Part shown: piece after piece, positions 3,267 to 61,440 of the stretch
How the letters are laid out: every line of letters begins with the position of its first letter
How positions within the stretch are numbered: position 1 is the first letter of the stretch
NCBI RefSeq assembly: GCF_022045235.1
Contig: NW_027266270.1
Location: 868,001-932,000, forward strand
Direction of reading: 5' to 3'
DNA: 64,000 bases
Source of the DNA: Haliotis cracherodii
Taxonomy: Eukaryota
Position numbers and translations under genes: made by a program
Notes under the pieces: model-generated
Database searches by the model: none
What the model was told of the DNA's origin: nothing
The model's input: only the letters and a program-made list of their open reading frames with translations

Positions 3267-3309
3267 CTGGAGGGAAATAAATCTAACTATGACAAACATG
3301 TTACACTAG

Positions 3310-6210
3310 CAGGGTGTGCGGGGTAGACTGGAGTGTGCGGGGTGTACTGGGGTGTGCGGGATGTACTGGGGTGTATGGGGTGTACTGGGGTGTGAAGGAT
3401 GTACTGGGGTGTGCGGGGTGTACTGGGGTGTATGGGGTGTACTGGGGTGTGCAAGGTGGACTGGGGTGTGCGAGTTGGACTGGGGTGTGCGGGGTGGACT
3501 GGGGTGTGCGGGATGGACTGGGGTGTGCGGGGTGGACTGGGGTGTGCGGGATGTACTGGGGTGTGCGGGGTGGACTGGGGTGTGCGTGGTGTATGGGGTG
3601 GACTGGGTTGTGAGAGGTGGACTGGGGTGGACTGGGTTGTGAGAGGTGGACTGGGATGTACTGGGGTGTACTGGGATGTACTGGGGTGTGCGGGGTGTAC
3701 TGGGGTGTATGGGGTGTACTGGGGTGTGCAGGGTGGACTGGGGTGTGCGGGGTGGACTGGGTGGACTGGGGTGTACTGGGGTGTGCAGGGTGGACTGGGG
3801 TGTGCGGGATGGACTGAGGTGTGCAGGGTGGACTGGGGTGTGCGGGGTGGACTGGGGTGTGCGGGGTGGACTGGGGTGTGCAGGGTGGCCTGGAGTGTGA
3901 GAGGTGGACTGGGTTGTGCGGGTTGGACGGGTGTGAGAGGTGGACTGGGGGCTGCGGGGTGGACTGGGGTGTGCGGGGTGGACTGGGGTGTGCAGGGTGT
4001 ATGGGGTGGACTGGGTTGTGAGAGGTGGACTGGGGTGGACTGGGTTGTGAGAGGTGGACTGGGGTGTGCGAGGTGGACTGGGATGTACTGGGGTGTGCGG
4101 GGGGGACTGGGGTGTGCGGGGTGGACTGGGGTGTACGGGGTGGACTGGGGTGTGCGGGGTGGACTGGGGTGTGCGGGGTTGACTGGGGTGTACGGGGTGG
4201 ACTGGGGTGTACGGGGTGGACTGGGGTGTACGGGGTGGACTGGGGTGTGCGGGATGTACTGGGGTGTACGGGGTGGACTGGGGTGTGCGGGGTGGACTGG
4301 GGTGTACGGGGTGGACTGGGGTGTACGGGGTGTACGGGGTGGACTGGGGTGTACGGGGTGGACTGGGGTGTGCGGGATGTACTGGGGTGTGCGGGATGTA
4401 CTGGGGTGTGCGGGGTGGACTGGGGTGTGCGTGGTGTATGGGGTGGACTGGGTTGTGAGAGGTGGACTGGGATGTACTGGGGTGGACTGGGTTGCGAGAG
4501 GTGGACTGGGATGTACTGGGGTGTACTGGGATGTTCTGGGATGTACTGGGGTGTGCGGGGTGTACTGGGGTGTATGGGGTGCACTGGGGTGTACTGGGGT
4601 GTGCAGGGTGTGCGGGATGGACTGCGGTGTGTGGGGTGGACTGGAGTGTGCGAGGTGGACTGGGGTGTGAGAGGTTGACTGGGGTTTGCGGGGTGGACTG
4701 GGGTGTGCGGGGTGGACTGGGGTGTGCGGGGTGGACTGGGGTGTGCGGGGTGGACTGGGGTGTGCGGGGTGGACTGGGGTGTGTGGGGTGGACTGGGGTG
4801 TGCGGGGTGCACTGGGGTGTGCGGGGTGGACTGGGGTGTGCGGGGTGGACTGGGGTGTGCGGGGTGGACTGGGGTGTGCGGGGTGGACTGGGGTGGACTG
4901 GGGTGTGCGGGGTGGACTGGGGTGTGCGGGGTGGACTGGGGTGTGAGAGGTTGACTGGGGTGTACGGGGTGGACTGGGGTGTGTGGGGTGGACTGGAGTG
5001 TGCGAGGTGGACTGGGGTGTGCGGGTGGACTGGGGTGTGCGGGGTGGACTGGGGTGTGCGGGGTGGACTGGGGTGTGCGGGGTGGACTGGGGTGGACTGG
5101 GTGGACTGGGGTGTGCGGGGTGGACTGGGGTGTGAGAGGTTGACTGGGGTGTACGGGGTGGACTGGGGTGTGTGGGGTGGACTGGGGTGTGCGGGGTGGA
5201 CTGGGGTGTGAGGGGTGTGCGGGGTGGACTGGGGTGTGAGAGGTTGACTGGGGTGTACGGGGTGGACTGGGGTGTGCGGCGTGGACTGGGGTGTGCGGGG
5301 TGGACTGGGGTGTGCGGGGTGGACTGGGGTGTGCAGGGTGTATGGGGTGGACTGGGTTGTGAGAGGTGGACTGGGGTGGACTGGGTTGTGAGAGGTGGAC
5401 TGGGGTGTGCGAGGTGGAATGGGATGTACTGGGGTGTGCGGGGGGGACTGGGGTGTGCGGGGGGACTGGGGTGTGCGGGTTTGACTGGGGTGTGAGAGGT
5501 GGACTGGGTGGATTGGGGTGTGTGGGGTGGACTGGGGTGTGCGGGGTGGACTGGGGTGTGCGGGGTGGACTGGGGTGTGCGGGGTTGACTGGGGTGTACG
5601 GGGTGGACTGGGGTGTACGGGGTGTACGGGGTGGACTGGGGTGTACGGGGTGGACTGGGGTGTACGGGGTGTACGGGTGGACTGGGGTGTACGGGGTGGA
5701 CTGGGGTGTACGGGGTGGACTGGGGTGTACGGGGTGTGCGGGGTGGACTGGGGTGTACGGGGTGGACTGGGGTGTGCGGGTGGACTGGGGTGTGCGGGGT
5801 GGACTGGGGTGTACGGGGTGGACTGGGGTGTGAGAGGTGTACTGGGGTGTGAGAGGTGGACTGGGGTGTGCGGGGTGGACTGGGGTGTGAGGGGTGTGAG
5901 AGGTGGACTGGGGTGTGCGGGGGGGACTGGGGTGTACGGGGTGGACTGGGGTGTGCGGGTGGACTGGGGTGTGCGGGGTGTGCGGGGTGGACTGGGGTGT
6001 GAGAGGTGGACTGGGATGTACTGGGGTGTGAGAGGTGGACTGGGGTGTGCGGGGTGGACTGGGGTGTGAGGGGTGTGAGAGGTGGACTGGGGTGTGCGGG
6101 GTGGACTGGGGTGTGAGAGGTGGACTGGGGTGTGCGGGGTGGACTGGGGTGTGCGGGGTGGACTGGGGTGTGCGGGGTGGACTGGGGTGTGTGGGGTGGA
6201 CTGGGGTGTA
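3310..6210. repeat. About 2.9-kb G-rich minisatellite, basic unit GGGGTGGACTGGGGTGTGC (19 bp) with variants
   Basis: Directly visible; lies in TRDMT1 intron 6 and ends about 40 bp from the exon 7 acceptor. Confidence 0.95.
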
Positions 6211-6828
6211 CAATGTATATATAAATACTGCTGAACATGTTTCACTAATGCTGTTACAGGCTACGTGGGCAGATGACTGGCGTAACAGGCTTCACATCAC
6301 CAGACAAGCGTGTACAGCTTCCCATGGTACAAACCTGGACACCCTGCTTATCATGACACGCCGACAAAGATACATGGTTTTGCTGATACAAGTGTGTGAC
6401 ATCAGGTCTGCCTGACAACCTGCCAGGGGTTACGGAATAGTTCTACATATGTGAACAGGTTCAATCATGATGTGACAATCAGATGATGTCATATAATTCA
6501 CCATCATGTCACAATGTCTGTACAAGCCAACAGACCACTTTGAAATGTTTTTTATAAGACAGCAACTGGCTAATCAGAGAGCTGTAATAAAATGATCTTG
6601 AATGATCTTGGGACTTTGTGTATATTGCTGAAAACTGTTAAGAAAAAACCCTTCATTATCTATTCCTAACACTTCCATGAATCTTTACAAAATATCTACA
6701 TGTGACCTTGACCTCATTTGATAAATACCGAAGATGCCCCTGACGTGACTGTTGGTACAAGGACATGATTGTCTCGGGTTTATTTAGGTCAAGTCTGTAA
6801 ACAGATGGAGAAACTATGTGTTGCTTAC

Positions 6829-6886
6829 ATCTCCATCACTCGTCATCTGGACAATCGAGCCGGCACCTTCTACAAAATGTCCGTAC
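6829..6886 (-). CDS. TRDMT1: TRDMT1 exon 6
   Basis: ttctgttgtag acceptor, GTAAGC donor; (R)YGHFVEGAGSIVQMTSDGD completes the DNMT2 CFTxxYxxxxEGxGS signature. Confidence 0.93.
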
Positions 6887-6958
6887 CTACAACAGAAAAT
6901 ATTGGAAATAACCATGATATGACACCTACCAATTCAGAAAACACCTGAACACTAGTTT

Positions 6959-7504
6959 GACAAGTGACAAGGATGGCATTCCAATAATAAGCTGGTCCTG
7001 ACAGGTGACAAGGATGTGATTCCAGTAATAAGCTGGTCCTGACAGGTAACAAGGATGTGATTCCAGTAATAAGCTGGTCCTGACAGGTGACAAGGATGTG
7101 ATTCCAGTTATAAGCTGGTCCTGACAGGTAACAAGGATGAGATTCCAGTAATAAGCTGGTCCTGACAGGTAACAAGGATGTGATTCCAGTAATAAGCTGG
7201 TCCTGACAGGTGACAAGGATGTGATTCCAGTAATAAGCTGGTCCTGACAGATGACAAGGATGTGATTCCAGTAATAAGCTGGTCCTGACGGGTGACAAGG
7301 ATGTGATTCCAGTAATAAGCTGGTCCTGACAGGTGACAAGGATGTGATTCCAGTAATAAGCTGGTCCTGACAGGTAACAAGGATGTGATTCCAGTAATAA
7401 GCTGGTCCTGACAGGCTACAAGGATGTGATTCCAGTAATAAGCTGGTCCTGACAGGTAACGATGTGATTCCAGTAATAAGCTGGTCCTGACAGGTGACAA
7501 GGAT
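6959..7504. repeat. 41-bp minisatellite (about 13 units)
   Basis: gacaggtgacaaggatgtgattccagtaataagctggtcct at 7000, 7041, 7082... Confidence 0.95.
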
Positions 7505-7686
7505 CAGTCAGGGCCGGTGACTTGGTAGGCTGTGTGTCATCATGCCTCAGTGATGTTGATCGTTGCTGGGGCTCTCAATCAGTGGATTGCCTGTCAAGGG
7601 TTGCCTAGTTACAGTTCGCAGTGGTACGGCTGGAATATTGCAGACTCTGGTGTATAACCCTCAGATTGACATGGACAGGACATGTG

Positions 7687-9750
7687 ATAAACGATCTATT
7701 CGAGGGTCTATCCCCTAAAGTAAACACATCAAAATTCGCGGATGATGGAGCCATCTGGATCCGCACTAAAAGCATGAAAATGGCCACAAATCTACTCCAA
7801 AAATCTCTTAATAAAATACAACAATGGGCTGACAAATGGGGCTTCTCCCTTAACTCAGAAAAAACAACAGGAATAGTATTAAACATAAAAACATGAAACC
7901 CGCCTCCCCAATCCTCCAGCTAAACAACCAAACAATCAAATTTCAAAAACAAACCAAATTCTTAGGACTTATTTTCGATGAACATCTCACCTGGGATGCT
8001 CACATCCAAAACCTAACAACTAAATGCAGTAAAGACCTAAACACCCTAAGATGCCTAACTGGCTCTAACTGGGGAGCCTCCAAAGATACTCTCCTCTCTC
8101 TCTACATATCCCTAATTAGATCAAAACTAGACTACGGCTGCGCCATATACAACACCCTAAACAACTCTCTATCCAAAAAACTTGACTCAATACAATATCA
8201 GGCTCTCAAACTCATTACACGCACCCAACATGGCACCTCCTACACCTCACTTCAGGCCTTAACAGGAGAAATGCCACTAAGTCTACGCAGGGAACAGCTA
8301 AGCTTAAATTTCTGGGCCGCGTCCCAATCAAACCCTCTCATCCAAAACTTAATAAACCAAAACATCAGCCCTAAAAACCAAGCTCTAGCTCGTAAACACC
8401 CCTTACTTACCCCAATATCCCAAAGAATAACAAACTACCTAAATGAACACCAAATTAAAAATCTTAAACAAAACTGCAAACAATCAAATATCTTCACCCC
8501 TAAACTTAAAATACCCAAAATAGACACAACACTAGCTAGCCAAATAAATAAACAAACCGACCCAAACATAGCTAAAACTACCACACTAGCATACATACAC
8601 AAAAATTGGCCAAATTGGTGTCACATTTACACGGACGGATCCTCAGATCCGACCTCCAAACACACGGGTTTCGGAGTCCATACCACACAACCAACTAAAA
8701 CCACACAATCCTTCCGACTCCCAAATAACCAATCAATATTCACGGCCGAACTAATGGGCATGGCCTCAGCCCTCCACAATCAAGAATCCAAAAACAACCA
8801 AAAAATCCTAATACTTACTGACTCCCTAAGTGGACTACAAGCCCTCCAAAACAAAAATACCAAAAACCGACCTAAATTAATAAATCAAATACTTAAAAGC
8901 TCCAACGACCTAACAAAAGCAGGCAAACAAATAACCTTCTTGTGGATACCCGCCCACGTAGGAATATACGGTAATGAAAACGCCGATAAAGCAGCTAAAC
9001 TATCCCTTAAAATCCCAGAAATAAGCTTAAACTTACCCATCTCAAAATCAGAAATTAAAAGTGTAAACAAACAAAAAATCACAAAAAAATGGCATAACCT
9101 ATATCTAAACTCAAATAGCAAAATCAAAAGAGTGCTCAGCAAACCACTAACCAAACCAAAAATTCTCCATCCATCAAAAAAAATCGACAGAGTAATCACT
9201 AAACTCCAAACAGGACACACCAACCTAAATAACCACCTAAAAAAATTTAAAAAACACACTACAGGTAACTGCCCACACTGCAAACAACCAGAAACCCCAG
9301 AACACGCACTCATCCACTGCACACACTACCTAACACATCGAACCGCATTACAAACCACCCTCAATCTAAACAAGGCTCTCACTCTAGAAGCAATACTAAA
9401 CCCACAAAATAAACTAGAAAACTTCAAGGCCTTAGGCGTATTCTTAATAAAAACGGAACTAATAAAACGCATCTAAAACCATAATAACCTACCAAATCAA
9501 AATCACATAAACAAACAATCATCCACCATACCCAGCTCCCTTAGTTCTCCTCCCCAACCCCATCAGCATCTATTCCAAATCTCAAAATTCCCAAATTCTA
9601 TATAAGCAACCCCTAAAGCCCCCTCTTGGGTTGCACAGACCACCCTCGCCCCTTTCGGAAACACATTAAATGGCCTGGCCGGGCCCGTGTGCGAAATACG
9701 CATCAGTCGGAAAGCGCACGTTAAATCTCCAAAGTAAGTAAGTAAGTAAG
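7687..9750 (+). mobile_element. 5'-truncated non-LTR retrotransposon with RT, RNase H and C-terminal zinc finger (I/Nimb/Loa-type LINE), antisense in TRDMT1 intron 5
   Basis: FADD RT motif; KFLGLIFD..LTW; RNase H motifs IYTDGS, SIFTAEL, ILTDSLS, WIPAHVGIYGNENAD; CPHC..H..C; (GTAA)n tail; target-site duplication ACAGGACATGTG at 7675-7686 and 9751-9762; one frameshift near 7890. Confidence 0.93.
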
Positions 9751-25384: not shown

Positions 25385-26811
25385 TACAACATACTTCTTA
25401 CCCAATCTCAGAACCAGTTGGAAACCATACAGAATAGACATTCCTCATACATAATGATACAATCTATTATCTATCAAGAAAACTCTAAAATGGCAGAAAA
25501 ATCAAAATGAACAAAATTGAAGCTGGCTGTTTGTTTAAAGGAAGTGTTTCACTGGTTTTCACAACTGAAATATGTCACATTGACTGTTTCAGGCACATAC
25601 TTATCCTATGGCAATTGTCAGAGTATTTCAAGGGCAATGGCATAATACAAAAGACAAAATATGAAAATCTTTTTAGCTTAATATTTAACAATAAGGTGCG
25701 GCAGAAGTTAGTATAGCATCATATGATCCTGGCCCACCTAAGGGACACAACTCTGCACAGCAAACTGTGTTTCCTTAGACAAGTGGGCCCCATTTCTGTT
25801 CTACTTACAACTACATCAGCACTTAATAACATGGAGGTAGAATGATGTTAATGTAAGTGTATTCATGTAGAAATCTTGCTACAAATGCCTGTTTAAGCCC
25901 CGCCAGTGGGCACACATTGCTCTGTGCACGATGACCTCACATGGAAACAAGGAACTAAAAGCTAACAGTCCCGCCTAAGTCCGAAGCTAGGCAACGTAAC
26001 ACACAATAACCAGGAGAAACAGACAGACAGTGTGTAAACCCAAACATCGACCACACAGAGATCAAGTATTCACATGAAGCACATCAAACTGGAAACATTA
26101 AATATGCAGAACGTTTCTTGTCAGAACTAACAGCTGGACACAGACAGGAACACAGCAACAAGCTGGACAAGATGTGTTCAAAGAGCTGGAGTATAACAAT
26201 CTTCAAAATAACATCCTACTTATCAGGATTCTTTCCAAATTTGGGTTTGAACTACAAAAATAGTTGATTCAGATTTGCATCCAACATATATTAGTTGGTA
26301 CACGTCCCTCCTCTTGCAATGAAGTCATCAAAGTGACCTTAAGATTCTTATTATGTCTCCATCGACCAGGCAGTTGAACCGGACTTGTCTAATGGTGACA
26401 TTAACGACATTAATCACATGGCATGTTATAGTCCCCCGAGTCCTGATAGTGTGTTCGTATGCATGTTCACATGCACAGTTCAGTGCTACGGTACTCCTAC
26501 ATAGATTAATGACAGTCATTGCATCTTATTGCTCTGTGCAGAGTTACCTGATCAACTTCAACTTCAGTTATGTTCCTTTTAAAATACCAAGGTGAATACA
26601 TGAGTCACAAGTCTTGATACAATATATATAAACAGCAACTGTGTCTTGGTGGAACTGCCTTCTGTAAATACATGGTTACCCGGTCAGTGTAACTGTTAAC
26701 ACTTCACCTGCTAATAATACATGTGATACTTCAGTACTTTAGGTGTACTCATATAAGGGTGTGGGTGGGGAGGTATGTGTCAATAAGATTCATGGGTGTG
26801 TGTGTGTATGC

Positions 26812-27246
26812 GTGTAGGTAGGGTGGTTGGGATAGATGGGGTGTGGGGTGGTGTAGACAGGGGTGGGGGTGTAGGTAGGGTGGTTGGTATAGATGGGGTG
26901 TGGGGTGGTGTAGACAGGAGCGGGGGTGTAGGTAGGGTGGTTGGTATAGATGGGGTGTGGGGTGGTGTAGACAGGGGTGGGCGTGTAGGTAGGGTGGTTG
27001 GGATAGATGGGGTGTGGGGTGGTGTAGACAGGAGCGGGGGTGTAGGTAGGGTGGTTGGTATAGATGGGGTGTGGGGTGGTGTAGACAGGGGTGGGGGTGT
27101 AGGTAGGGTGTGTGGTATAGATGGGGTGTGGGGTGGTGTAGACAGGGGCGGGGGTGTAGGTAGGGTGGTTGGTACAGATGGGGTGTGGGGTGGTGTAGAC
27201 AGGGGCGGGGGTGTAGGTAGGGTGGTTGGGATAGATGGGGTGTGGG
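26812..27246. repeat. 57-bp G-rich minisatellite (about 7.5 units)
   Basis: Units at 26812, 26869... Confidence 0.93.
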
Positions 27247-29136
27247 GAGGGGAACTGTTGAGAGAGGGTGAGAGAGGGTGATAGATGGGTGGGTGGGGTG
27301 GGTTTGGAGAAAGACTGGGGTGGATAGGGGATAGAAGTTGGCGGGTGGAAAAGTATAACTGTGGCTGTGTGTCAACAATAGTTTCCATGGTTACCTAGCA
27401 GTAACAATACTTATAAATACAGTTACAGTCGGTTGATTCGAACAACCCTAGACTAGAGTACCACAATCTTTAAAAAAATTACATCTTTACAAAATAATCA
27501 ACTACGTGGTGGGTTTTGACAGCGTCTACTTTAGTGTAAAAGTATAAAAATACTTTATTATTGTCGATCAGTGCACAACCTTGGGTACAAAAATAAAGGT
27601 GACTGGTCACAGTGTTGAGCACTTGAACTTGGCGAGGACAATTCCTCATACATACAACAGGCAAAACCCCGCCATGGAGACCTCGCTACGCAGTGCGACA
27701 CATGCCACTAAGTAATAACATCATTTCAATATACACAAACCCACGAAGTTAAACAATGTTGACTTACTCAATATTCACCATATTCGGATGCATTTAGATT
27801 TCCCATTCTGTGAAGAAAGTATCATTAGAAGGACACTAACAGTTCATGCATAGACATATTGTTATTGTCTTTGGTTTGTTTCAATGTGACTCACGGGAAG
27901 TGCTCACAATTACACAGTCAATACTTCACAGGTGTGGTCCCACATCCCTGCATCCTCCGTCAATACAAACTGCCAAGTTGGGATGAAGTCAGTGTTTTTG
28001 ACTCATGAATCAAGCCACTGATTGGTTCAGAAGGAAGCCAATGAGCACTCAGATTACATCGCAACCAGCATGTGCAGCATCAACACACTGCTTCAATATG
28101 AGGCAATGGTAGCGTTTCCACAAAGTTCACTTGCGTTCCAGGAGTACAAAAGGTCTCACTTCATCAGTCAACTAGACACACATCACAACAACACCGCAAC
28201 TCGGCCGATGTATTCGGAGGTGATGGAGAAACTTGGTGTAGACAAAACGTGTGAAGTATTGACGATGTCACAATTATTGCTATGGAGTCGCCTGTGAAGA
28301 ACCTGGCGACACTGGCCTACGGCTGTCATACACGGACAGTGATACACGAGGAAGGCTCACTCACTCACTCACTCACTCACTCTCCATCACATGCATTACA
28401 TATTCACAAAGTAAATTTGGGGTACTAAAATATAGTTGTTTTCTTCAAAAGATCTGTACAATCTACTTGTACACTAAAGGTGGGAGATATATTTTCAAAT
28501 TGATCCAGACCAGTTTGTTTACTTGTTTTACAGATAAATCTGCCTCAATGTCAAACATGGTGTGTCTGTTTTCAGTCCATGTTGCGACATTGTAGCCAGC
28601 GTTACTCTTAAACACGATGAATGTTTTCAGCAAAGAAAATCAGAAACAATTGACATGTTGTCAGCTGTGACTGAAACTTCCTGGCGCCATCTCCCCTATT
28701 GCTGCACTGCAGATATATCTGTCTTACATTACCCATCAGCACTCTGGGCATCCGTGCCTCATCTTAGCTCAGATAATCCATGAAACAAGAAATAAACTGG
28801 TCCAGACTACAAAATACTGTATGCTTAGTTCCAAGTCAGTTACCATGGTTACTAAACATTGCTCGTTTCAGCACCACTTTCTCACAGGTTCAAATGTGTC
28901 TCCGACATCACATCGCAGTGGATAACATCAACGTCCGAGTGACGCTCATGATGATGACTATGTACACAATTTCTAATAATGAACAAAATTCATGAATATT
29001 GTTATAGGTAAGAATACACTGTGACACACTTCTGTACAACTAGCCAACCAAAATGATTACGAAATATGTTAATTATGGTAATTTAAGACAATCTATTGTA
29101 ACATAAAATGACAGATTGTCTTGTCATAGTAAAGAT

Positions 29137-30661: not shown

Positions 30662-30799
30662 TCATTGATTTAGCCTCTCCAGTTCTTCGGGGGATAAAAA
30701 TCGGACGTGCGTAAAGGGGAATATTCCAGTTCTTCCGTTCACCTCCCCTTCCCACTGTCCGTTAACATTCATTGCTGTGACTGTGATTATCTCCCCTTT
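30662..30799 (-). CDS. CRK: CRK exon 8, terminal (C-terminal SH3)
   Basis: [48 protein letters not shown]; the eight exons sum to 768 nt = 255 aa + stop. Confidence 0.96.
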   Translation of the reverse strand, partial: [45 protein letters not shown]

Positions 30800-31274: not shown

Positions 31275-31352
31275 CAATAGCTTCAGCTGTGTTTTATCGT
31301 AAGCATTGGGTATCCTCTGGGTGATCACAGTAGCCTTGGCTGGCAGGGTAAC
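31275..31352 (-). CDS. CRK: CRK exon 7 (C-terminal SH3, first part)
   Basis: VTLPAKATVITQRIPNAYDKTQLKLL contains the Crk-specific PNAYDKT motif; ttgtttcag acceptor, GTAGGT donor. Confidence 0.95.
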
Positions 31353-31519
31353 CTGAAACAAGGAAGGCAGATCATACATAACAAACACATCATTCATCTC
31401 TCTATCAACAACATACTCAGTCAGTCATCACATCCATCTCACATCTATCTGTACTTGACATATATGTAACATACTTGTATTTTATTCGTCAGTGATGTTT
31501 TGATAAACTTCCAGGTACC

Positions 31520-32870
31520 GTTAACATTGGTGGCATTGGCATTTAGGTCTGTTAATATCTGTGGTATTGGCATTTAGGTCTGTTAACATCAGTGGTATTG
31601 GCATTTAGGTCTGTTAACATCAGTGGTATTGGCATTTAGGTCTGTTAACATCGGTGGTATTGGCATTTAGGTCTGTTAACATCGGTGGTATTGGCATTTA
31701 GGTCTGTTAACATCGGTGGTATTGGCATTTAGGGTCTGTTAACATCGGTGGTATTGGCATTTAGGTCTGTTAACATTGGTGATATTGGCATTTAGGTCTG
31801 TTAACATCAGTGGTATAGGCATTTCTGTCTGTTAACATCTGTGGTATTGGCATTTAGGTCTGTTAACATCGGTGGTATTGGCATTTAGGTCTGTTAACAT
31901 CAGTGGTATTGGCATTTAGGTCTGTTAACATCGGTGGTATTGGCATTAAGGTCTGTTAACATCGGTGGTATTGGCATTTATGTCTGTTAACATCGGTGGT
32001 ATTGGCATTTAGGTCTGTTAACATCAGTGGTATAGGCATTTCTGTCTGTTAACATCGGTGGTATTGGCATTAAGGTCTGTTAACATCAGGGGTATTGGCA
32101 TTTAGGTCTGTTAACATCAGTGGTATTGGCATTTAGGTCTGTTAACATCGGTGGTATTGGCATTTAGGTCTGTTAACATCGGTGGTATTGGCATTTAGGT
32201 CTGTTAACATCGGTGGTATTGGCATTTATGCCAGTTTACATCAGTGGTATTGGCATTTATGTCTGTTAACATCAGTGGTATTGGCATTTATGTCTGTTAA
32301 CATCAGTGGTATAGGCATTTATGTCTGTTAACATCAATGGTATTGACATTTAAGTCTGTTAACATCAGTGGTATTGGCATTTATGCCTGTTAACATCACT
32401 GGTATTGGCATTTCTGTCTGTTAACATCGATGGTATTGACATTTATGTCTGTTAACATCAGAAGTATTGGCATTTATGCCTGTTAACAACGGTGGTATTG
32501 GCATTTATGTCTGTTAACATCGGTGGTATTGGTATTTATGCCTGTTAACATCTGTGGTATTGGCATTTATGTCTGTTAACATCAGTGGTATTGGCATTAA
32601 TGCCTGTTAACATCAGTGCTATTTGCATTTACGCCTGTTAACATTGTTGTCGTCAGTGTTAACATTAGTGGTCTGTTAACATCGTGGTATCTGTACTTAC
32701 ATCTATTAACATCCTGGTATCTGTACTTATGTATGTTAACATCAGTGGTATTGACATTTATGTCTGTAAACATCAGTGGAATTGGCATTAATGCCTGTTA
32801 ACATCAGTGGTATTGGCATTTATGCCTGTTAATATCAGTGGTATTGGCATTTATGCCTGTTAACATCGTT
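31520..32870. repeat. 31-bp minisatellite in CRK intron 6, related to the end of exon 6
   Basis: gtggtattggcatttaggtctgttaacatca, about 40 units. Confidence 0.93.
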
Positions 32871-32894
32871 GGTGTCAGTGTTAACATTAGTGGT

Positions 32895-33710
32895 CTGTTA
32901 ACATGATGGTATCTGTACTTACGTCTGTTAACATCGTGGTATCTGTACTTATGTATGTTAACATCGTGGTATCTGTACTTATGTATGTTAACATCGTGGT
33001 ATCTGTACTTACGTCTGTTAACATCGTGGTATCTGTACTTATGTATGTTAACATCGTGGTATCTGTACTTACGTCTGTTAACATCGTGGTATCTGTACTT
33101 ATGTATGTTAACATCATTGTATCTGTACTTATGTATGTTAACATCGTGGTATCTGTACTTATGTATGTTAACATCGTGGTATCTGTACTTATGTATGTTA
33201 ACATCGTGGTATCTGTACTTATGTATGTTAACATCGTGGTATCTGTACTTACGTCTGTTAACATCGTGGTATCTGTACTTACGTCTGTTAACATCGTGGT
33301 ATCTGTACTTATGTATGTTAACATCGTGGTATCTGTACTTATGTATGTTAACATGGTGGTATCTGTACTTATGTATGTTAACATCGAGGTATCTGTACTT
33401 ACGTCTGTTAACATCGTGGTATCTGTACTTATGTATGTTAACATCATTGTATCTGTACTTATGTATGTTAACATCATGGTATCTGTACTTATGTATGTTA
33501 ACATCGTGGTATCTGTACTTATGTATGTTAACATCGTGGTATCTGTACTTATGTATGTTAACATCGTGGTATCTGTACTTATGTATGTTAACATCGTGGT
33601 ATCTGTACTTACGTCTGTTAACATCGTGGTATCTGTACTTATGTATGTTAACATCGTGGTATCTGTACTTATGTATGTTAACATCGTGGTATCTGTACTT
33701 ACGTCTGTTA
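32895..33710. repeat. 30-bp minisatellite (27 units) spanning the CRK exon 6 donor
   Basis: atctgtactta(cgtc/tgta)tgttaacatcgtggt in perfect 30-bp register. Confidence 0.96.
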
Positions 33711-33768
33711 TCATTGGTGGTATTGGACTCTGGTAGTCTGGTCTGGGTGGGCTCGTTACTTCCTGATA
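33703..33768 (-). CDS. CRK: CRK exon 6 (inter-SH3 linker with YxxP motif)
   Basis: ctttccttgcag acceptor, GAC|GTAAGT donor, phase 0/0; YQEVTSPPRPDYQSPIPPMITD, with YQSP positioned like CrkII Y221 (YAQP). Confidence 0.82.
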
Positions 33769-34943: not shown

Positions 34944-35072
34944 CTTGCCAAAGTACGGCACGGGGATCTGTCCAACCCGACCTTGGTTGTTGCGGGCTGT
35001 CCACCAGCTCTCCTCGTCCTTGGAGATCACTTCCAACACTTCCCCCTTCAGGAACGGGAGATCCTCGGGGTC
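34944..35072 (-). CDS. CRK: CRK exon 5 (N-terminal SH3)
   Basis: DPEDLPFLKGEVLEVISKDEESWWTARNNQGRVGQIPVPYFGK; ttgcag acceptor, AAG|GTATGC donor. Confidence 0.96.
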
Positions 35073-35112
35073 CTGCAACAGCATCAACACTGAGTCATTC
35101 CACGTGATCACA

Positions 35113-35263
35113 ACTACTACTACTACTACTCCTGCCACTACCGCTACTGCTACTACTACAACTCCTACATTACTGCTTGTACTACTGCTACAACTGCTAC
35201 TACTGCTACTATTACTGCTACTACTACTGCTACTACCACTACAACTCCTACTACTGCTGCTAC
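35113..35263. repeat. (CTA/CTG)n microsatellite
   Basis: Directly visible, about 40 bp upstream of the CRK exon 5 acceptor. Confidence 0.9.
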
Positions 35264-36384
35264 AATGGTCAATGATCAGTGTGTACTCAACAATCCTTCT
35301 CATTACATGTTTGACATCAAATGACTCAAGCATATGATTCAGTCAGTAATCAGTAACAACCAGTGTCAGAAGTAAAACTGACCAGCAGAGAGATTAGTCA
35401 TGTCACTTGATTGTGATGTCATGGTATCTAATGATGTCACAATGGTCTGCAAAGCTTTGTGATGAAATTTCAGTGCTGAGATATCCTGTGAAGGCCAGTT
35501 TTGGAAGATTAATAGAATATCGCCCTTGTGTCTATTAAGCCTCTATCGACTCGTGCTGACATATTTGATATCAAAAGACGCTTGCGCGAGATTCCCTAGA
35601 TCTTCAGTTTCATGGATAACAAAGAACAATCCCCACCTCAAGTAATTCTGACATCATCAACATGTGTTTATTCCAGGCAGCGATATTGAATTTCAACAGA
35701 CTTGAACCCTACTGGCCTGCCACACTTAGATTCAGCTCAAATTTCCTCCATGACATTGACAACATGACTTCCCCAGCAGATGCAGGACATCCCATTGGAC
35801 CAGATGGGATACAATTAGACGTCCTAATTGCATAGGAAGAGGTACTTAAACATCAGTTTTTTTTGTCTATCCTGAAGAGCACTTCATAGATACTATCTCT
35901 CAAACTCAAGCACTTGTAACTTTCTCAACAACTCTTGCAACAGTTTTCTTTCATAAACATTTAAACAGTAGCTTGTGTTTGCCTTAGCCCTATATATCAA
36001 GGTTTCAGCTATTATAGCTTCTAAATTTCCACTCAATCAAATGACGGTGTCCGTTACATTGCATACATAATATCTGATAAAACAAATGTGTTCCAAGGTT
36101 TTGAGACATGCCCTGTCGACATCTCCCTGTCACACTGACATACTTAGGTACAGCGTGAGTGTGACAAATTCCTGGTGCACTCGTTACAACAATAGCCAGT
36201 CAGGCATGGGGACCAGGAAGTGTTCTCACAGTAACAGTTGGTGCTGGACAAAGTTTCTCCCCCACAATATATTGAACAATGAACAATATCAAAATCATAC
36301 CAAAATATACATCAAAAGGCCTTACATTTGGGGGGAAAGTGACAAAAGTTGTTGAGTAACAAATGATAGATTATTAATTGACTA

Positions 36385-36900
36385 ATGTGATGTGATGTCT
36401 GTGTGGCGTGGCGTGGCGTGGGCGTGGCGTGACGTGACGTGACGTGACGTGACGTGGCGTAGTGCCTGTGTGGCGTGGCGTGGCGTGGCGTGGCGTGGCG
36501 TGACGTGACGTGATGTGGCGTAGTGCCTGTGTGGCGTGGCGTGGCGTGGCGTGGCGTGGCGTGGTGTCTGTGTGGTGTGATGTCTGTGTAGTCTCTGTGT
36601 GGTGTCTGTGTGATGTGATGTGATGTGGCGTAGTGCCTGTGTGGTGTGGTGTGGCATGGCATGGCGTGGCGTGGCGTGGCGTGGCGTGGCGTGGCGTGGC
36701 GTGACGTGGCGTAGTGCCTGTGTGGTGTGGTGTGGTGTGGCGTGGCGTGGTGTCTGTGTGGTGTCTGTGTGATGTGATGTGATGTGATGTGATGTGATGT
36801 GATGTGATGTGATGTGGCGTAGTGCCTGTGTGGTGTGGTGTGGTGTGGTGTGGTGTGGTGCGGTGTGGTGTGGTGTGGTGTTATGGTGTTGTCTGTGTGG
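36385..36900. repeat. Compound pentanucleotide repeat (GTGGC/GTGAC/GTGAT/GTGGT)
   Basis: Directly visible. Confidence 0.92.
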
Positions 36901-37159: not shown

Positions 37160-37651
<492 letters not shown>

Positions 37652-53461: not shown

Positions 53462-56400
53462 GGTCATTACAACACAAAGTGGAAGTCTTTGAATAAAAAC
53501 AAATCCGAACATATTGTCGTTGTGATGAGTCAGAGGTGTGACAGTACTAATGTCGTGTAATTCAATATTAGGCATGTGCTTATGGCATCCGGTGCATGAA
53601 CATCACCAGTGAAGATGTTGTAGGCCCCAAAATGTCAGCTGTCTTTGACATTCACCAACAGCAAGGAAAAATGACCAACTTTTTCTACCACCATCAGAAC
53701 AACGATACTAGACAAACTATGTTATAAAATAGACAAAATACTTTCCACTCGTCCTTGTAATTATTTGACCAAAACAACAAAAAACCACTAGACAAGTACT
53801 ATTTGTATTCTTGCACCAACTGCATACTTACCTATTCACCGTACACAAAATGCTAAACAGCCAACAATGCACACATGCCAACACAATCAAATAACATCTC
53901 CACTGTTTGAATCTGAAATGACTGTTTCTATTTTCCCACCCTAGACCAGGATCTCTTCCCAATACAATCCCCATACCAAGAAACAGCCTGTCTCACAGTC
54001 CCTTATCCATATTATTTTCCCATCTGTCCTGCATTACTGTTATGCTATGGCTCTAAATGAAGCAAGCCTAGATTTTCCGCAAGCTCAGGTTCTGAATATC
54101 CCATCTTACTGGGGCTCCATTTCGATTTTAATGTAATTATTGTTTCTAAATAATATATATAGACTAAGCGTTAGTCTAACCAAGAAACAAAATAATCTGG
54201 CTTGATGATTACTTTAACACAGAGCTTATTGCTTTGAGTGAGTGAGTAGTCAGGTATAAATAACAGAATTTGCTGTTATTGGGAGGTCAAATCCTTTACC
54301 TTTCTTTGTTTAGCATTTGTAGGACTCAACATGTCAACTGCCTGTCGTCTGCGGCTACAATTACAACTAACATATACAAGCAAAATCATTCCTCAGAAAT
54401 TAACAAACGCAGTTTATTATTTGCCATTGCTATGATCATAACGTATACATACGTAAATTTGTACAGTTAGGAGATGAACATACTGTGTTTTCAATGTAGA
54501 GCAAGGTTACCTGTAGATTTAACATCGCTAAATTGAATTTGGAACCAAACGTGCACGTGTCATAGCACTCATTGTGACGCAAAAGATACGACGTCACAGT
54601 CGTATACAGAGAAGCGCCAAATTCCAAGCTGTTGGCCCCAAAACTTAAAATACATTCTCTTTAAAGATTTCTATCATGTTTCCTGCACATTGTGTATTGC
54701 CACACATCCTCTGAGTATTGTAGTAACTGCAACTTTGCGTTTTGTAACCTAGAATTGTAGATATTACTTATCTAAATAATTATACCTACCGACAATGACT
54801 GAAAAAAGTACTATTTTGGATATTAACGTTCGCAGTGATGCAGACGTTAAACCAGCTGTTTCAATCAGAGGGGGTTTATTGTGATTTAATAGTCTCTGAT
54901 TGACCAATCAGAATCAAGTAATTTCCAAATTCGTGGTAGAATTGCTATTCAAATGTACATGTACAATAAAACCAGGTTATCACTGCTGTCCCTATTTATT
55001 GGCACAAAATCAAGCTTCAAATACCAAGATACCCAATATGGGATCTGTATTTGAAAATAATTGTCATCAAACTTTTAATTGTAATCAATATGATTGAATT
55101 ACTGCCAATGTCAGTTGAAATATTAACTCACTCATTCCTACAAGAAGAGAACCACATGAGAATTTATGGTTCATCATAGAGGAGACAGGTCCTAGATGTG
55201 CTCAACTGGTCCACATGAATAGTGACACTGGATGCATTACATTAGGCAGGATTCGTGAGTGAGTGAGTTGTGTTTTAACGCCACTTTTAACAGTATTCCA
55301 GTTATATCACGCCGTGTCAGCTGAATGTGAGAGGAAAGCCCCAAGTGATGCAGGTCTCAGGCGTTTACCACTTCGATGAAACCCACGAGCACGAGTATGG
55401 AGCTGACAAACCTAGAAATATTATTCGGGCAAATTGGGATTCGAACCCGCAATCATAGGTTTCTGGCGTGCCCAAGGGACGCAACTCTGCACAGCGAATT
55501 GCAGCACCTCAGAGGACTGAGCCACCAGTGCCCCCAATTCATGATTAAGTGTTTTCTTGGCATTCTAGAAGTTGGTGAGTAAATAAGAAAACAAAAAGCT
55601 GTAAGGACAACAACTCGGTCAACAGACTCTGTCATAAGTAGGGCTGGCTAAAAACATCGATAATCCGAATTATCGTCGATGGGAAGAAATATTACCGATA
55701 ATCGATATGAAAATTGTGTCATCGATAATATCTCACAAAAACTATTGTGATGAATAAAGTTTTAAGTTACTGAAGATTGAAAGCAACTGATTTTGTTAGA
55801 CCTTAAATATACACAAAATTATCCATGTATAAATGTGTCACCACTCACCAGTGATATGAAACGTGATGTTTTGTCTCCGAGCTTTTTGTATATTTGCTGA
55901 AAGTTACTTATCTGATATTTATCGATTATTGATTGATATCCTCACAAACAGAATAAAATACCACACTAACAGCCCAAAACATCAAGAAATTATAATTTGT
56001 ACCACTCCTCAGGGTGCCAATTACACCGACTACGGTACAGCCTCTTCGTCCATATACAGGTGAATCTGGACACTGTATTTACACATCACAATAACGAAGC
56101 AAAAGTGTAAACTCCAATGAATAACTTATTCATCAAAAATAGGTCATAGTGACCCGATACTCTTTCATCGATCAATAGTCAAAACAAGCGTATTGATCAT
56201 GTCAACACAAATGTGCCACCCACGGACCAGATACAGTGTTGTATAAGCAGAATAAAACAGCAGATGTTCACCAACTCTCCTGGTGTATAAATCAAGTATA
56301 CTACATAAGCTGCTGGGTCTGTGAGACTTTATCAGTATTTATCGATATATATTCAGTCATGTTATAACACAATAACAAGGAGCAAACATGTGAGGCAGTT

Positions 56401-58890: not shown

Positions 58891-58925
58891 CTTAGTTTGT
58901 CGTGCGGATCAAAATCTGCCGCCAT
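58891..58925 (-). CDS. CRK: Crk-family adaptor, coding exon 1 of 8
   Basis: MAADFDPHDKL(S) resembles the Crk N-terminus (MAGNFD...SWY); the phase-2 donor AG|GTTGGT matches exon 2. Confidence 0.8.
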
Positions 58926-60909: not shown

Positions 60910-61440
60910 NNNNNNNNNNNNNNNNNNNNNNNNNNNNNNNNNNNNNNNNNNNNNNNNNNNNNNNNNNNNNNNNNNNNNNNNNNNNNNNNNNNNNNNNNNN
61001 NNNNNNNNNNNNNNNNNNNNNNNNNNNNNNNNNNNNNNNNNNNNNNNNNNNNNNNNNNNNNNNNNNNNNNNNNNNNNNNNNNNNNNNNNNNNNNNNNNNN
61101 NNNNNNNNNNNNNNNNNNNNNNNNNNNNNNNNNNNNNNNNNNNNNNNNNNNNNNNNNNNNNNNNNNNNNNNNNNNNNNNNNNNNNNNNNNNNNNNNNNNN
61201 NNNNNNNNNNNNNNNNNNNNNNNNNNNNNNNNNNNNNNNNNNNNNNNNNNNNNNNNNNNNNNNNNNNNNNNNNNNNNNNNNNNNNNNNNNNNNNNNNNNN
61301 NNNNNNNNNNNNNNNNNNNNNNNNNNNNNNNNNNNNNNNNNNNNNNNNNNNNNNNNNNNNNNNNNNNNNNNNNNNNNNNNNNNNNNNNNNNNNNNNNNNN
61401 NNNNNNNNNNNNNNNNNNNNNNNNNNNNNNNNNNNNNNNN
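60910..61440. other. Assembly gap (531 N)
   Basis: Run of N. Confidence 1.

Follow-up and report, generated by a model that had tools for sequence, protein, structure and literature searches.

The window analysed here is a 64-kb stretch of genomic DNA from the abalone Haliotis cracherodii (C7:868001-932000), taken from a single-haplotype assembly of 1.18 Gb in 80 contigs. It contains a Crk-like gene on the minus strand. When the SH3-N exon was used as a protein query, the 'adapter molecule Crk-like' of H. cracherodii (XP_071099778.1, 255 aa) was retrieved with 100% identity. The Pfam content of this protein, PF00017 (SH2) together with PF00018/PF14604/PF07653 (SH3), corresponds to the SH2-SH3-SH3 architecture of Crk/CrkL. 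Exon placement was carried out by tblastn of XP_071099778.1 against the 64-kb window, and all eight exons were recovered there with 100% identity (Table 1). Exon 5, for instance, accounts for residues 120-162 of the protein without a single mismatch. The exon matches and the SH2 and SH3 domains agree with the assignment of the gene to Crk in a preliminary description of this DNA.

Table 1. Coordinates of the Crk-like gene, of the intron 6 array and of a second donor-spanning array in the assembly.
Feature	Position	Strand	Basis or remark
Crk exon 1	near 58925	-	tblastn
Crk exon 2	46664-46536	-	tblastn
Crk exon 3	about 37627-37472	-	tblastn; donor ACCG|GTGAGT
Crk exon 4	about 37035-36988	-	tblastn
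Crk exon 5, second half of SH3-N, DPEDLPF...PVPYFGK	34944..35072	-	phase 0-0; donor AAG|GTATGC
Crk exon 6, linker exon, 66 nt, 22 codons, encodes YQEVTSPPRPDYQSPIPPMITD	33703..33768	-	phase 0-0
Native GT of the exon 6 donor, GAC|GTAAGT	33701..33702	-	donor in four Haliotis RefSeq models
30-bp sub-array, 26 units, homogeneous, young	32917..33696	-	95.6% mean pairwise identity
First in-frame stop (TAA), exon 6 frame read into the intron	32887..32889	-	frame walk
Transition zone from the 30-bp to the 31-bp family	32626..32916	-	segmentation
31-bp sub-array, older, consensus CCAATACCACYGATGTTAACAGACMTAAATG	31509..32625	-	all donors inactivated
Sole non-repetitive part of intron 6, 156 nt	31353..31508	-	pyrimidine tract and acceptor ...ccttccttgtttcag
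Crk exon 7, start of SH3-C, VTLPAKATVITQRIPNAYDKTQLKLL	31275..31352	-	phase 0-0
Crk exon 8, last exon, coding part, KGEIITV...PEELERLNQ	30665..30799	-	tblastn
EXT-family donor-spanning array	G000:C1:26971543-26972983	-	period 34 bp, not a multiple of 3

Exon 6 is preceded by the acceptor ...ccttgcag (minus-strand reading) and encodes the sequence DYQSP, a YxxP motif within the inter-SH3 linker. The inter-SH3 linker of CrkII carries a regulatory tyrosine in such a motif. In an alignment, the Y-x-x-P of exon 6 was matched by a Y-x-x-P in 7 of 10 mollusc Crk proteins, and the exon 6 motif would fit a link to the regulatory tyrosine of CrkII. The 90% cluster of XP_071099778.1 includes the RefSeq models of H. 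cracherodii, H. rufescens, H. rubra and H. asinina. XP_ entries are predicted gene models; the Crk models of the four species are each 255 aa long, and none is labelled as an isoform. All four read ...PYFGK|YQEVTSPPRPDYQSPIPPM[I/L]TD|VTLPAK..., which corresponds to the first donor of exon 6 joined to exon 7 (beginning GTTACCCTG in nucleotides). Since the four models read through PPM[I/L]TD|VTLPAK, the annotated mRNA includes exon 6 and connects its first donor with exon 7. Exon 6 had been taken for a linker exon with a YxxP motif, and both its presence in the four models and the DYQSP that it encodes confirm this.

Intron 6 has a length of 2350 nt, of which 2194 nt (93%) are filled by a tandem array. 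TRF placed the array at 31520-33726, with a period of 31, 71.6 copies, 89% matches and a score of 2282. Segmentation on the conserved GTTAAC core yielded about 74 units between 33726 and 31509, with 27 units of 30 bp and about 45 of 31 bp. The array had previously been described as comprising 27 units; these are present as the units of 30 bp, but the whole array, by TRF and segmentation, amounts to about 74 units. The first unit (33726-33697) reaches over the exon boundary, with about 24-25 of its nucleotides in exon 6. The consensus of the 31-bp family, CCAATACCACYGATGTTAACAGACMTAAATG, represents the last 25 nt of exon 6 followed by the first 6 nt of the intron. Of its 31 positions, 25 agree with the first unit, and thus with the native junction; when translated, it reads PIPPMLTD.

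Along the array the state of the donor changes. In the 30-bp sub-array seven units are donor-intact and identical to each other, and the other nineteen are donor-dead (TACATAAGT). The order of units in the 30-bp block is ABBABBBBBBABBBAABBBBBABABBA, where A denotes a donor-intact unit and B one with TACATAAGT. The transition zone contains two copies of a boundary segment ~222 nt apart, at 32916-32848 and at 32694-32626, together with a short island of units of the 30-bp type. The 40 exact 31-bp units of intron 6, a few of which fall in the transition zone, show an average pairwise identity of 87%. Position +1 of the donor is the most variable column of these units (A 19, C 19, G 1, T 1), and position +5 is A in 39 of the 40. 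The donors of the 31-bp family are doubly dead, with both +1 and +5 changed.

The native end of exon 6 reads ATAACAGAC, and its counterpart at the repeat donors is TTAACAGAC. The motif GACGTAAGT, the same as at the native site, occurs with its G at 33702 (native), 33612, 33402, 33282, 33252, 33072, 33012 and 32922. As the units share this motif with the native junction, the 30-bp repeat is indeed a copy of the exon 6/intron junction, as had been stated in the preliminary description. The seven extra donors are located 90 to 780 nt (30 to 260 codons) downstream of the native donor, are identical to it from -8 to beyond +20 and are in phase 0. The sites, the number and the extension lengths (+30 to +260 codons) reported earlier were all reproduced. 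A walk along the exon 6 frame found TAA at 32889-32887, in line with the earlier statement that the extra donors are in phase 0 and that the frame stays open until 32887. The open frame itself carries no weight: no stop interrupts 4 of the 6 frames within the 780-nt homogeneous block, with long ORFs on both strands, which makes openness a trivial property of the 30-bp unit. Past the stop, two more units contain a GT, namely GATGTAAGT at 32700, within the island of the transition zone, and GGCGTAAAT near 32632. The exon 6 donor does not have the usual G at -1, which is found in the other six donors of the Crk gene.

Tandem repeats constitute a large share of the 64-kb window, and the long stop-free frames within them are artefacts of periodicity. 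Intron 3 of the Crk gene contains a 42-bp minisatellite of 7 units (37160-37452, minus strand), starting ~20 nt after the exon 3 donor. In intron 4, a complex pentanucleotide array (36403-36881, minus strand) lies ~60 nt after the exon 4 donor; it is composed of CCACG/CCACA/TCACA blocks with CACAGGCACTACG between them. Both were considered as junction-spanning arrays and rejected, as they start ~20 and ~60 nt past the donors and exclude them. Directly upstream of the exon 5 acceptor (35090-35340, minus strand), runs of AGT/AGC/GTA translate as poly-Ser and poly-Val. Further minisatellites are located at 3290-6290, 6873-7507, 26783-27394, 39946-41344, 44134-45677, 50042-51134 and 52353-53462; these have periods of 16 to 100 bp and lengths of up to 3 kb. 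Elsewhere in the window, a 540-aa stop-free frame (7854-9473, plus strand) resembles, by eye, the reverse transcriptase of a non-LTR retrotransposon, and positions 60910-61440 are a run of 531 N (gap or masked).

The native 31-mer was searched for with up to 7 mismatches (<=7). It gave 28 further matches, and intron 6 contains every one of them; the rest of the 64-kb window is free of matches on both strands. When ten units were used to search the whole assembly, this locus and two weak matches were returned. The latter were rejected as members of the family, being unrelated 26-bp and 16-bp arrays, and an origin from a dispersed repeat family or a transposon was dismissed on the same result. 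As the matches to the 31-mer and in the assembly are confined in this way, the family is locus-specific and appears to have arisen in place from the junction; we infer a history of duplication in place. At residue 182, near the end of exon 6, H. rubra and H. asinina have Leu (PPMLTD), and H. cracherodii and H. rufescens have Ile (PPMITD). Nearly all repeat units carry TTA (Leu) at this position versus ATA (Ile) in the native exon. Because the units keep TTA and two of the species have Leu, the array was probably seeded while the junction still read TTA, before the Leu-to-Ile change in the exon.

A comparable array was found at an unrelated gene of the same assembly. An EXT-family (Glyco_transf_64) exon at G000:C1:26972972-26973139 ends with ...TVYHR|GTAGGT and is followed by about 43 tandem units of 34 bp, each reading CCATAG|GTAGGTGGAGGATAA with an intact GTAGGT donor. 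With 34 bp, the period of this array does not divide by three, and the phenomenon is thus tied neither to Crk nor to the preservation of a reading frame. The recurrence argues for a general mutational process and not for a Crk-specific device. Being general in the abalone genome, the phenomenon lowers the odds of a function specific to Crk.

The preliminary description proposed the array as an allele-specific tuner of linker length: the seven in-frame pseudo-donors would be used as alternative 5' splice sites, and copy number would tune isoform ratios between alleles. In the resulting isoforms the inter-SH3 linker would be longer by 30 to 260 residues rich in Thr, Ser and Asp. Nothing intrinsic silences the pseudo-donors, which match the native site over the whole U1-binding region and cannot be told from it by donor-scoring schemes. 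Moreover, nonsense-mediated decay would not hide the extensions, since they are in frame and stop-free. Further support comes from isoform X1 of the Pecten maximus Crk-like protein, where a 26-aa Pro-rich insert is located between the end of the linker exon and the V[KT]LPA start of SH3-C (alignment columns 210-235), that is, at the same linker junction. This insert indicates that the junction tolerates length variation. However, extended isoforms were found neither among the RefSeq models of the four Haliotis species nor in the protein libraries searched. The 300-aa read-through ORF, compared with 5.8 billion clusters, retrieved XP_071099778.1 alone, via its exon 6 part. A 52-aa piece consisting of exon 6 and three units gave no candidate in the same 5.8 billion clusters. 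A full HMMER pass over 1.84 billion representatives resulted in 348 low-identity matches; the inspected ones were translations of other 10-residue periodic repeats, and no Crk was among them. STDTTMLT-repeat peptides, which had been suggested as a test in proteomes, were thus found in none of these three protein-library searches. Coding selection on the repeat was also considered and was rejected, as 4 of 6 frames are open and the library matches inspected are unrelated periodic low-complexity proteins.

Known arrays of this type bear on the proposal in both directions. IFI6 and CBS splice constitutively from their nearest pseudo-sites (PMC1557585), which would favour the use of pseudo-sites in abalone; however, only units adjoining the real donor are used in these genes, and the two nearest units of the abalone array are donor-dead. 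This position beside the real donor does not demonstrate selection for dead units: as 19 of the 26 units are dead, both first units would be dead by chance with a probability of ~0.53, so that their status carries no weight. Use of the pseudo-donors would further produce exons of 156 to 846 nt, compared with the native 66 nt, and the open frame that makes the extensions conceivable is trivial. Wherever members of the known class have been studied, the upstream-most donor dominates (PMC1557585, PMC3087553). The first donor is also the one taken in the four RefSeq models, which come without isoforms. The like array in the unrelated EXT-family gene, with its period outside the multiples of 3, again favours a general mutational process over a tuner specific to Crk. 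We consider it unlikely that the pseudo-donors serve as alternative 5' splice sites through which copy number sets isoform ratios. It also seems very unlikely that some of the seven are used to a measurable extent, giving (T[D/Y][V/I]STDTTML)n linkers with 30 to 260 extra residues after the YxxP motif and isoform sets that differ between alleles. Because the gene models of four abalone species splice from the first copy, the array is probably neutral, a curiosity and not an isoform-tuning device. The fallback of the preliminary description, that the array could be neutral if the first donor alone is used, is the better reading than linker tuning.

Downstream U1 sites can enhance the definition of an upstream exon. 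The intact pseudo-donors might therefore be intronic U1 snRNP binding sites which remain unspliced and define the short exon 6, or protect the intron from premature processing. Such a role would suit an exon of 66 nt that is followed within 780 nt by eight strong U1-complementary sites (GTAAGTA) and whose donor, unlike the other six of the gene, is without the usual G at -1. The loss of the site in 19 of 26 young units and in all older ones is, however, unlike maintenance. In addition, no differences exist among the intact units, which is the pattern that recent amplification, and not conservation, would leave. The chance that the pseudo-donors act in this way is accordingly slim. Assemblies are prone to errors in tandem arrays, and an amphioxus globin mirage was mis-assembled in the draft genome (PMC3087553), so the array, or its length and unit order, might be an artefact of assembly. 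Against this, the structured sub-families, the private variants and the duplicated boundary segment are typical of a real minisatellite. The 1.18 Gb are contained in only 80 contigs, a 2.2-kb array is shorter than typical long reads, and a similar array is present at another locus of the assembly. We regard an artefact as extremely improbable.

Taken together, intron 6 was quite probably inflated by a junction-spanning minisatellite of the mirage or F7 type, with splicing from the first donor and copies that decay with age. In this scenario, a segment of ~31 bp over the exon 6/intron 6 junction (25 exon nt and GTAAGT) would have been tandemly duplicated in place. Unequal exchange or slippage may then have expanded it to about 74 units, enlarging a formerly short intron 6 to 2.35 kb. 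The spliceosome would take the first, authentic donor, and the copies would leave with the intron. The older 31-bp units would have lost the GT wholly. In the youngest 30-bp block beside the exon, 19 donor-dead units would stand together with seven intact pseudo-donors that are presumably silent or nearly so, and the array would be neutral.

The Crk locus offers a natural setting in which eight identical 5' splice sites face a single acceptor and compete for it. Any extension would keep the frame and escape nonsense-mediated decay, so the locus could serve to test donor choice, and with it the rule from F7 that the upstream-most donor wins could be examined in a mollusc. Minisatellites that span a donor seem to occur often in the abalone genome, the Crk and the EXT-family arrays being the verified ones. 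Such frequency points to a mutational process by which exon-intron junctions become the seeds of tandem arrays and introns are inflated, as has been proposed for the amphioxus 'mirages'. The genome-wide pattern is of greater interest than the single Crk intron. In annotation, donor-spanning arrays give rise to spurious alternative-donor calls and to spurious long open reading frames.

In vertebrates, the CrkI and CrkII isoforms result from alternative 5' splice sites downstream of SH3-N. A likeness to abalone would lie in donor choice after SH3-N altering the Crk output and in a linker with a regulatory YxxP motif. The vertebrate CrkI donor differs in that it is located inside an exon, truncates the protein before SH3-C and is free of repeats. 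The class to which the abalone array belongs has already been described, with F7 IVS7, IFI6, CBS, LMNB2, PDGFA and the amphioxus 'mirages' as members. Like these, the abalone array is arranged head to tail with units in the range of ~10 to 160 bp, as seen by TRF and in the 74-unit segmentation, and its first monomer holds the real exon end and 5' splice site, with the donor reiterated in the intron. It is possibly the first of its class in a Crk gene and in a gastropod.

A close parallel is the 37-bp VNTR in intron 7 of human F7 (Borensztajn et al. 2006, PMC1557585), whose first monomer reaches across the exon-intron boundary. The pseudo-sites of F7 IVS7 are functional and identical to the authentic site, and the upstream-most one alone is used (PMC1557585). 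Both arrays have the first monomer over the boundary and identical pseudo-donors after the authentic one; the upstream-most site is the one used in F7 and, in abalone, the one predicted by the gene models. In F7 the units number 5 to 9, measure 37 bp, include 4 exon nt each and are all intact; the abalone units number about 74, measure 30 or 31 bp and include 25 exon nt each, and most of their donors have decayed. The abalone array further differs in its period, a multiple of 3 with an open frame, and in its mollusc host, and it is known here from DNA and gene models. In LMNB2 and PDGFA, as listed in the same work, the authentic donor alone is used, and in IFI6 (6-16) and CBS the two nearest pseudo-sites are used as well (PMC1557585). 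The 12-nt minisatellite in intron 2 of IFI6 and the VNTR in intron 13 of CBS reiterate the donor as the abalone array does (PMC1557585), and the period of IFI6 is likewise in frame, so that use of a pseudo-site adds whole codons. The pseudo-sites used constitutively in IFI6 and CBS are the two nearest to the real donor, whereas in abalone the two nearest are dead and the first intact copy is 90 nt away. The amphioxus mirages in Adh3 and in the globin genes BflGb6 and BflGb9 leave regular splicing undisturbed (PMC3087553). They resemble the abalone arrays in being boundary-spanning duplications in several genes with local homogenisation. They differ in their cephalochordate host, in units that range from 10 to 160 bp, in the position of some of them at acceptors and in the allelic and somatic length instability that has been shown for them (PMC3087553).
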